Shown here piece after piece: positions 23,058 through 24,781 of a DNA stretch of 64,000 nt. A model generated the notes under the pieces. That model was given only the letters and a program-made list of their open reading frames with translations. It did not search any database and was not told where the DNA came from. The stretch comes from Pavona decussata (Eukaryota). The position numbers and the translations under genes are program-made. Position 1 is the first letter of the stretch, and each line of letters starts with the position of its first letter. The stretch lies in contig CDRNST010000002.1 of the NCBI GenBank assembly GCA_977016875.1, positions 1,922,001-1,986,000 of the forward strand, read 5' to 3'.

Positions 23058-24781
23058 ATGAACAAGAAAAACAAAGTAGATTGGTCTAACATCGATGGTG
23101 CATTACCCAAACCAAAACGCCTCCATTTGGAAAAAGACGAGACAGACAGCTTGTATCACTGTCCAATACAAGTTTGCGACCATGAAGGATTTCAAAGTCA
23201 GCGTGGATGTAGGAAACATGTGAATTCTAAGCAGAGCTGGTTCTTTTATTTCGATGGAAAACCCGAACTGAAACATCAACAACAATCGCTGCAAGTTTCC
23301 CCAACCAACTTATCAGTGACCACCACAAGTGACTGTGCATCCACCGAAACCACAAGAATGCACGCCACCAAGTTATTTCCTTCATTTTCAGTCTCTGGAA
23401 AAATTGGCCAAGATTTCGCCAATTGGTTGACTGGAAGTGGGGGTGGCTACAAGAAAGATCGCACAGCTCAACAAATAGCTAAGAGAAGCTTTAAATTTTT
23501 GAAATTTTGTTGCGAAGACGAGGAGGAATTGACGTTTGAAGTGATAGACTACAGTGTTTGCTCTCCAAATCTACTGTTCAAGTTCATCGACTTCTTGCAA
23601 GACGGGTGCAAACTCGGACATGGAGGACGATTGGGATACATAGACGCAATTTCCGATCTAATAGACTTTCGAAAAATCAACGGAACATCGGACGCAGTTC
23701 TGCGAAACCTATCCGTGACTGAATTGTACCTTAAGCGAGCTCGAAAGACGGTGGCAAAGATGATGAGATTGCAGTGGTCTCAAGACCTGGATATCGACAC
23801 GTTGGAAGCCCGAGGTCACTGGGCCACGATGGACGAATTGTTACGAGTCGTGACGTTTCACTTGCCACGTTTCGAAAACACCGTCAAAACGTGTAAGAAC
23901 TGTCCAAATCAAGTAAACCCGTCAGACTTAACATTTGCGACGAGGTTTGTGTCGATGTATCTGTTCATCAAAGTGAAGGGGTCGCGCCCAATGACTTATC
24001 AGTATTTGACGGAGGACATGGTCAATGCAGCGAAGGCAAACGGAGGATTCGTCGATCAAAAAATGTTCAAGACCGCCGGAAAGTACGGTTTCGATTCGCT
24101 GATCCTGACCGATGCCAGCATGCAAGTGATCGATAATTACATCTCTATTGTCAGGCCATTGCTGAACCCACGGTGCGACTATGTTCTCGTCACGAGAAAT
24201 GGAGGCCAGCAAAGTAAACTGGGCGATGTGATGAGCAAACTGGTGTTTGATGCGATTGGCAAATACATTCATCCGACTCGATATCGTCAGATTGTCGAAA
24301 CGCAAAGCCTCAATCAATTGACTAGTACCGAGCAGAAAATTTTGTCAGAGGACCAGAAACACAGTTCTGCTGTCCCAAAAATCCACTATCAAAAGCAACG
24401 ATCGCGCGAAGTTGCCGTCAAGGGCCACGAATGTCTACAAAAACTTCAAGGAAGCAAGGGTTCAGAAGTGGACGAGGAAGTTCACGCTAGATTTGGCGTT
24501 TCAAAGTCAGCCTCTGCAACGCCAATTGAAAATGCTGATATGGAAATTCCCCCCAAAACGACTAAGGATGACCCACCCGTTGAGCGCTTGCGAATTCAGA
24601 GAAAACTTCGTCGTGTATTGAAATTCACGTCACACGAGGATGATTTTCTCAAGAAAGGAATCCATAGGCACGGGTTTGGACAGTGGACAGCTATTCTGAG
24701 AGATCCTGAGTTAAAGAGGGAAGAACGGCGGACTCTCTAACGAAAAGCGCTGGACTCAAAATGTCGCTAAGTTGTGAATAA
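23058..24781 (+). CDS. Tyrosine recombinase with N-terminal C2H2-like finger and C-terminal TRF-like Myb/SANT domain (3' frameshift)
   Basis: Catalytic-like motifs 'KGSRP' (R), 'FKTAGKYG' (K), 'HPTRYR', 'QKHSSAVPKIHY' (H..Y). Finger 'CPIQVC..KHVNSKQ'. Myb 'KFTSHEDDFLKKGIHRHGFGQWTAILRD'. The ORF stops at 24740, but a shifted frame continues 'KEGRTADSLTKSAGLKMSLSCE*'. Confidence 0.85.

Follow-up and report, generated by a model that had tools for sequence, protein, structure and literature searches.

Layout of the element

In the window, the 64-kb stretch of Pavona decussata DNA analysed here, a gene for a predicted tyrosine recombinase (YR) and a broken, convergent gene for a putative SF3-type helicase lie within a segment that opens at a microsatellite. 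The microsatellite is a (CTTC/CCTT)n tract on the plus strand at positions 21459 to 21541 (TRF, 20.8 perfect units), the sole plus-strand tract of its type within the window, and forms the left flank and presumptive target of the element. A (CCTT)n tract at the presumed left border had already been pointed out in the first-pass annotation of this sequence, and it ends exactly where the element starts, with a 5′ terminal inverted repeat, AACGTTTCCCAAAAATTTG (21542 to 21560, plus strand), that is a putative recombinase-binding half-site. In related copies at four other loci (L001, L003, L004, and L005; proteins 86 to 96% identical), a similar tract stands directly 5′ of the same terminal sequence, and the DNA shared with the window begins exactly at 21459.

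On the right, 80-bp tandem repeats and the last bases in common with L003 occupy positions 28344 to 28576. The 2.2 kb that follow in the L003 unit are absent from the window, and no 3′ terminus motif was found anywhere in its 64 kb, the element's right end being absent. Over 21459 to 28576, L003 and the window are 97% identical except for a 1.3-kb deletion, with unrelated flanks, and the unit therefore spans the minus-strand open reading frames (ORFs) that lie downstream of the recombinase gene. An origin of these ORFs in an unrelated neighboring repeat is ruled out, since divergent subfamilies of corals, and a jellyfish as well, have the same convergent pair within the same ends. Pfam searches of the ORFs between the ends recovered no reverse transcriptase or RNase H, and intact units carry the YR and helicase genes only. 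Positions 21459 to approximately 28576 are probably a decayed and 3′-truncated two-gene cnidarian YR DNA transposon, most likely of the CryptonV group, in which it is filed by description.

The recombinase gene

The plus-strand ORF at 23058 to 24740 (560 amino acids [aa], cut short by a frameshift; full-length intact relatives are mostly 559 to 593 aa) is, as judged by structure prediction, a tyrosine recombinase joined to a finger and a TRF-like Myb domain. The protein modelled with AlphaFold2 was P0001, an intact relative 93% identical to the window ORF, and an alignment of 90 diverse sequences gave a mean pLDDT of 87.6, in place of an alignment of nine close homologues whose model was unusable (pLDDT, 35.5). 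In Foldseek searches of the PDB, the best matches of this model were XerA, YopR, lambda Int, XerD, Cre, and XerH, with a probability of ~1.0; Tn1549 Int and IntI were also among the top matches, and 330 to 400 columns were aligned. The same search against viral structures returned only integrases and baculovirus VLF-1. The YR fold that had been proposed from the bare sequence is thus upheld by the predicted structure. At the level of sequence profiles, Pfam gave no YR match for the window ORF, with weak matches to Myb/HTH_CHD1 only, and a single weak Phage_int_SAM_1 match and no DUF3504 across 25 members of the family; PDB sequence-profile searches, run with the entire protein and again with only its catalytic part, yielded TRF matches or noise and no YR.

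The two-domain YR core, as delimited by the Foldseek matches and conserved catalytic columns, spans residues ~110 to 470 (23385 to 24467, plus strand). The window copy retains R310, K338, H405, R408, R410, H435, and Y444, so that every residue of the R-K-H-R-H-Y set suggested in the first-pass annotation is present. Among 25 diverse relatives, R310, K338, R410, H435, and Y444 are invariant and R408 is kept in at least 90%, but H405 is variable, and the first His of that set is therefore not a feature of the family. What is kept family-wide, by comparison of sequence columns, is R-K-R-H-Y. The spacings of 9 residues between H435 and Y444 and of 28 between R310 and K338 are Cre- and XerD-like. 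The layout of finger, YR, and Myb is itself kept down to ~36% identity among the 25 members.

A word-index search recovered 969 relatives of the window ORF, the best of them 93 to 96% identical, and an exhaustive profile search recovered 1,135 cluster representatives (clustering at 50% identity), of which 249 had an E value of <1e-30. Differences between copies are mostly synonymous (dN/dS, 0.08 to 0.21), which indicates that the recombinase gene is under purifying selection. Given these numbers of relatives and cluster representatives and these dN/dS values, the ORF is not a chance frame. The relatives that carry a species name, a minority, are all cnidarian, comprising “uncharacterized protein” entries of Oculina patagonica as well as Rhopilema esculentum.

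Finger and Myb domains and the lesions of the window copy

The N-terminal finger lies at 23160 to 23234 (plus strand; C35, C40, H54, and Gln59 in alignment with relatives). In relatives it reads C35-x4-C40-x13-H54-x4-H59 (CX4CX13HX4H), and the region is well modelled in P0001 (pLDDT >88 over residues 11 to 70). The alignment, with eight relatives, agrees with the earlier description of a C2H2-like finger in which Gln stands in place of the last His: this is residue 59, encoded by the codon at 23232 to 23234.

The C-terminal Myb domain (24615 to 24781, plus strand) has its third helix in a shifted frame that runs to a stop codon at 24779 to 24781. Its TRF-type character, also proposed previously, is corroborated by two approaches. 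TRF2 and TRF1 are the best matches in a PDB sequence-profile search (E value, 1.4e-4 for TRF2), and Foldseek aligns the domain with the TRF2 Myb at a TM score of 0.73 to 0.80 and 31 to 35% identity. Beyond residue 553, relatives continue with FKFQDGRTADSLKKRAG, whereas the window reads LKREERRTL and stops; the matching EGRTADSLTKSAGLKMSLSCE, followed by a stop, is found in another frame of the window and ends at 24781. In a DNA alignment, five other copies have 7 extra bases between window positions 24713 and 24717 (plus strand), and it is because of this 7-bp deletion in the window copy that helix 3 is out of frame, as the first reading of the sequence had it. With a finger ligand, Myb helix 3, the integrity of the helicase gene, and the right end lost, the window copy cannot mobilise by itself. 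It is ordinary in itself, a dead member of a very common and already catalogued cnidarian repeat family, and the family is of more interest than the single copy.

A convergent gene for a putative SF3-type helicase

The partner gene occupies 24970 to 27884 on the minus strand, as mapped by tblastn searches in which P0343, P0422, and P0327, all intact relatives, served as queries. It is broken in the window: these relatives align in two different frames, with the change falling between 26735 and 26559, and the gene has lost its Walker A stretch. Motif C (CPMFITCQ) is found in the window ORF at 25093 to 26313, and the Walker A of the L003 helicase reads GEPNSGKTS (pattern GxxNSGKTS). The gene has an N-terminal extension, and the N-terminal region of the product, of roughly 260 to 450 residues, carries no family assignment. 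The families DUF5906, PPV_E1_C, and Parvo_NS1 match 7 to 9 of 15 helicase members, the scores of the first member falling below Pfam cut-offs, and with three SF3 families in agreement at sub-threshold Pfam scores the partner gene is consistently assigned as a putative SF3-type helicase. The relatives of this gene that carry a name come exclusively from Scleractinia (Oculina, Montipora, Desmophyllum, Porites, and Acropora), and the UniRef label of one Porites relative is “SF3 helicase domain-containing protein”.

Intact helicase genes of 749 to 796 aa are convergent with an intact YR-Myb gene at L006, L007, and L011 to L015, and the convergent pair is observed as well in the window, in L001, L003, and L004, and in the jellyfish locus L008. 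The jellyfish, Rhopilema esculentum, encodes an 857-aa helicase homologue that is arranged in the same way (29% identity; E value, 1e-46). As the same pair is found in corals and Rhopilema, the pairing of YR and helicase is older than the split between corals and jellyfish. Copies at L002, L005, and L017 to L021 are without a large helicase ORF, and L016 is an internal deletion derivative of a helicase-bearing copy.

The GGAAC array

Between the 5′ end and the recombinase gene lies a dense array of the pentamer GGAAC/GTTCC (21700 to 22830, no strand), which includes a 156-bp tandem repeat at 21849 to 22296 and a 160-bp tandem repeat at 22417 to 22733. We count 52 GGAAC/GTTCC pentamers in 21542 to 23057, or 34 per kb versus 2.1 per kb window-wide, and shuffled sequences held 1.9 on average and 8 at most. 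The array is found at the same position in L001, L002, L004 to L007, L012, L014, and L018, and it occurs in all coral subfamilies whatever their target, measuring 0.7 to 2.5 kb and lying upstream of the recombinase gene. One GGAAC is also present just inside the 3′ end. No such array was found in the jellyfish copy, although its Myb helix 3 is identical, which weakens the idea that the Myb domain binds GGAAC. Like the terminal inverted repeats and the convergent gene for the putative SF3 helicase, the array had been missed in the first-pass annotation.

Element ends, junction spacers, and target repeats

Intact copies at 20 other loci are bounded by 12- to 15-bp inverted repeats, CGTTTCCCAAAA. 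All coral copies start with A, T, or C followed by ACGTTTCCCAAAA, and complete ones finish in TTGGGAAACGAT; the reverse complement, TTTTGGGAAACGAT, closes the element before the right microsatellite in L001, L002, L004, L005, and L011 to L021. The association with microsatellites that had been suspected earlier holds when the flanks are tabulated: most copies adjoin pyrimidine-rich microsatellites in a single orientation, and most coral loci lie in repeats, with L012 and L013 as exceptions. In the window subfamily and its relatives (L001 to L007), both the left and the right flanks are of the (CCTT)n type in the same orientation. In the subfamily of P0023, the left flanks are (CCT)n-rich in L014 and L016, an upstream copy in L015, and nonrepetitive in L012 and L013, while L011 is without its 5′ end; on the right, four of the six are (CCT)n-rich and L012 and L013 are again not in repeats. 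The P0091 subfamily (L017 to L021) has (CTAT)n, (CCAT)n, or (CTTT)n on the left and (CTAT)n or (CTTT)n-like repeats on the right, and the one Rhopilema locus (L008) has (AT)n on both sides.

Where copies stand head to tail, their junction consists of an inverted repeat, an 8-bp spacer, and an inverted repeat (15-8-15). In L002, the junctions at 4029 and 8875 read GGGAAACG-ATCTTATA-CGTTTCCC, within a perfect 15-bp inverted repeat; this junction, found twice, can also be written AAATTTTGGGAAACG-ATCTTATA-CGTTTCCCAAAATTT. The L006 junction at 15374 has the spacer TTAAGGAT, or ATCCTTAA on the YR strand, the L015 junction has ATCCTCCA, and those of L017, L019, and L021 have ATCTTCTA. Set beside the flanks, ATCCTTAA goes with (CCTT)n, ATCCTCCA with (CCT)n, and ATCTTCTA with (CTAT)n, (CTTT)n, and (CCAT)n, the cores of the spacers being CCTT for (CCTT)n flanks, CCTCC for (CCT)n flanks, and CTTC for flanks of the CTNT type. 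The 8-bp spacer thus covaries with the flanking microsatellite, subfamily by subfamily. In L018, the left junction has the spacer unit of the element and the right junction the unit of the target, a mismatch that would require heteroduplex repair or offset cleavage.

Copy number and mobility

The units measure 4.8 to 9 kb and hold two genes only, and there are hundreds of germline copies; the cluster of P0014 has 405 members. An identical 571-aa YR is encoded at six loci (L011 to L016, the P0023 subfamily), which share 99% DNA identity over ~8.8 kb, and at five of these six the 796-aa helicase gene is intact. Another YR, of 576 aa, is identical at five loci. Near-identical copies of the P0023 type with intact genes are apparently active.

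Relation to known systems

CryptonV has been described as a group of cnidarian target-site-specific Cryptons with some microsatellite-specific families (Kapitonov and Jurka 2012, Repbase Rep 12:2034, as cited in PMC8869645), and the Repbase classification lists it among the Crypton groups. As far as it is characterized in the citing paper, CryptonV shares with the present family a YR-encoding DNA transposon, a cnidarian host, and target specificity that includes microsatellites, a likeness of description. Because host, enzyme, and target behavior all fit, membership in CryptonV is the most likely filing, again by description. The first-pass annotation had left room for an architecture that matches an already described Crypton subgroup, and on the description given in PMC8869645 this is probably the case. 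In the searchable literature, a scope outside which the original CryptonV report lies, we found nothing on the finger-YR-Myb layout, on a partner helicase, on the inverted ends, or on a spacer rule. Nothing relevant emerged either on a Crypton that carries a Myb, a helicase, or an SF3 helicase, and besides the Repbase citation and classification, CryptonV occurs in the papers searched as a repeat-annotation label only.

The animal groups CryptonA and CryptonI lack both a C-terminal domain and terminal repeats (Kojima and Jurka 2011, PMC3212892). They share with the present family YR-only transposases in animals, the lack of a reverse transcriptase, and a presumed circular intermediate (PMC3212892), but the present family differs in its C-terminal Myb, its N-terminal finger, its 12- to 15-bp inverted ends, and its second gene. 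In addition, DUF3504, the Pfam family built from CryptonA YRs, is matched by 0 of 25 members. Microsatellite-specific non-LTR retrotransposons also use microsatellites as harmless repeated targets; their enzymes are an endonuclease and a reverse transcriptase (reviewed in PMC8869645), so that enzyme and mechanism differ from the YR seen here.

Beyond transposons, a likeness in layout is found in site-specific recombination systems. The loxP and FRT sites are built of inverted repeats around an asymmetric 8-bp spacer. Cre/loxP and Flp/FRT thus have in common with the present family both the YR fold and a site made of inverted repeats and an asymmetric 8-bp spacer, and the yeast 2-micron plasmid likewise places a recombinase beside a replication function. 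Unlike Cre and Flp, to which it has no detectable sequence homology, the putative recombinase described here carries an added finger and Myb, and its partner site would be a genomic microsatellite in place of a second full site. Polinton-like viruses and virophages are small integrating elements of eukaryotes that encode an SF3 helicase beside a YR integrase, a combination that the putative helicase here would share, but they measure 14 to 40 kb versus 5 to 9 kb here, and the present element is a multicopy germline repeat in animals. No double jelly-roll capsid, penton, or packaging ATPase was found, the 5- to 9-kb units having no other long ORFs and no capsid-family Pfam matches.

Proposed mechanism and alternative explanations

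From the ends, junctions, and flanks we infer circular excision and spacer-guided targeting. The YR would excise the element as a circle in which the joined ends form a full 15-8-15 site, and the circle would reintegrate by YR strand exchange where the spacer recurs, i.e., in a matching microsatellite; integration into the site of a resident copy would give rise to tandem arrays. The finger and Myb would find accessory sites in conserved DNA of the element, at its ends and/or in the GGAAC array, and would not bind the target. The GGAAC array may be where the helicase starts replicating the circle, which would raise the copy number despite a cut-and-paste enzyme. We put forward tentatively, as a possibility that is still more doubtful than probable, that the family represents an undescribed kind of Crypton, one in which an SF3 helicase of viral type and an iteron array accompany the YR, which replicates as a circle, and which has its target chosen by a lox/FRT-like spacer. 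Against the proposed mechanism of excision and targeting stand two observations in particular. L012 and L013, two of the six copies of the P0023 subfamily, are outside microsatellites, and the YR-only copies L002, L005, L016, and L017 to L021 have been amplified without a helicase in cis.

The same gene pair would also suit an integrating episome, plasmid- or virus-like, in which the helicase and the GGAAC iterons would together serve replication while the YR integrates the element or resolves its multimers, in the manner of Flp in the yeast 2-micron plasmid or of the integrases of Polinton-like viruses. A putative SF3-helicase gene kept with the YR since before the divergence of corals and jellyfish, an origin-like pentamer array, a lox/FRT-like site, and head-to-tail arrays that resemble concatemers are all in keeping with such an element. 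However, its two-gene units of 4.8 to 9 kb have no capsid, packaging, or polymerase gene, the search of viral structures yielded generic integrases only, and the hundreds of germline copies include helicase-less deletion derivatives that still spread (L016, as well as L002 and the 405-member P0014 cluster). We regard an episome as unlikely, while noting that it overlaps the transposon explanation and does not exclude it.

The mechanism suggested in the first-pass annotation, in which the finger and/or the TRF-like Myb would choose the site by reading microsatellite or telomeric repeats, or the adjacent array, fares less well and appears improbable. It would account for ends that adjoin microsatellites at most loci, the nearest known relatives of the Myb are telomere-repeat binders, and GGAA is found in the GGAAC motif as well as in the complement of (CCTT)n. 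However, subfamilies with (CCTT)n, (CCT)n, (CTAT)n/(CTTT)n/(CCAT)n, and (AT)n flanks do not differ in Myb helix 3 (DSLKKRA) or in the finger helix (RGCRKH..KH); the recognition helices stay constant while the 8-bp spacer follows the repeat, which speaks against targeting of short repeats by the extra domains. As for telomeric repeats, a search for TTAGGG arrays found none in the 64-kb window. In addition, the strict orientation of insertion is what is expected of an asymmetric crossover region.

A nonmobile host gene, domesticated from a Crypton like the ZMYM/KCTD1 DUF3504 genes, would agree with the purifying selection and with the listing of relatives at NCBI as ordinary “uncharacterized protein LOC...” genes, but it is very improbable in view of catalytic residues that are kept here, most of which DUF3504 genes lack (PMC3212892), the absence of a DUF3504 match from all 25 members, the many loci at which identical copies have defined ends and form tandem arrays, and the decay of the window copy.

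Spacer-guided integration of a circular YR transposon is the reading we favor, with the reservations given above. YR transposons of animals are poorly understood, and we know of none with a defined recombination site or a demonstrated mechanism. The present family provides near-identical intact copies, such as the P0023 subfamily, and a candidate site that is compact, at ~38 bp, and the match between spacer and microsatellite is a rule simple enough for bench tests. If true, the spacer rule would explain how very high copy numbers are reached in corals while genes are spared, and the family would constitute a naturally retargetable animal site-specific recombinase system and a possible source of eukaryote-derived recombinases. 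The helicase partner, finally, bears on the old question of how cut-and-paste YR elements amplify.

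Near-identical copies and insertion sites

Six loci on six contigs of ENA ERZ25067879 (L011-L016), belonging to the (CCT)n-associated subfamily of the element, all encode one identical 571-aa tyrosine recombinase (YR) within units of ~8.8 kb that are 99% identical to each other. The 796-aa helicase gene is intact at five of the six, and judged from these sequences the set looks like an autonomous subfamily that was active recently. At L016, the helicase gene has been removed by an internal deletion.

Although this subfamily is (CCT)n-associated, two of its copies (L012 and L013) have nonrepeat flanks at both element ends, and microsatellite specificity is thus not absolute. 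The element-type CCTCC unit is nonetheless still present at their left junction. The window also has an oppositely oriented (AAGG)n-type tract (12924-12983, minus strand), which lies near an N run (12121-12460) and has no element end adjoining it.

Extent of the helicase protein

Upstream of a 762-aa helicase open reading frame (ORF) we observe a stretch of ~200 aa that is homologous to the N terminus of the helicase ORF in other copies. The regions concerned are 9267-9890 of L006 and, on the minus strand, 11552-12880 of L003 and 27494-27884 of the window. Given this homology, the complete protein may be longer, at ~860-1000 aa. Neither the N-terminal region (~260-450 residues) nor the C-terminal half matched any known family.

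Jellyfish copy and distant relatives

In the jellyfish Rhopilema esculentum (GCA_013076305.1), the YR and helicase pair is flanked by two (AT)n tracts at a single locus (L008:9343-16043). The ends of this one unit differ from those of the coral copies, it lacks the GGAAC array, and its 3' end holds two copies of a 29-bp direct repeat (15938-15995). More distantly, two marine metagenome contigs (L009 and L010) carry a 669-aa family member followed on the same strand by a 116-aa ORF; the helicase gene is absent from these contigs, which span 5-6 kb.

Other features of the window

Two plus-strand rhodopsin-family GPCR ORFs are found at 7-678 (7tm_1, E 4e-17) and 4707-5633 (7tm_1, E 2e-22). The element copy at L001 also has a 7tm gene nearby, yet L001 and the window share no flanking DNA. 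The plus-strand ORF at 52237-53700 (487 aa) combines Roc and COR-A domains and is probably a fragmentary ROCO-type GTPase. Shortly after an N run (33897-34028) lies a 245-aa plus-strand ORF (34829-35566) with a weak SAP domain match (E 5e-4). Tandem repeats at 33500-33828 (period, 169 bp) and 55750-56400 (period, 207 bp) are unrelated to the element.
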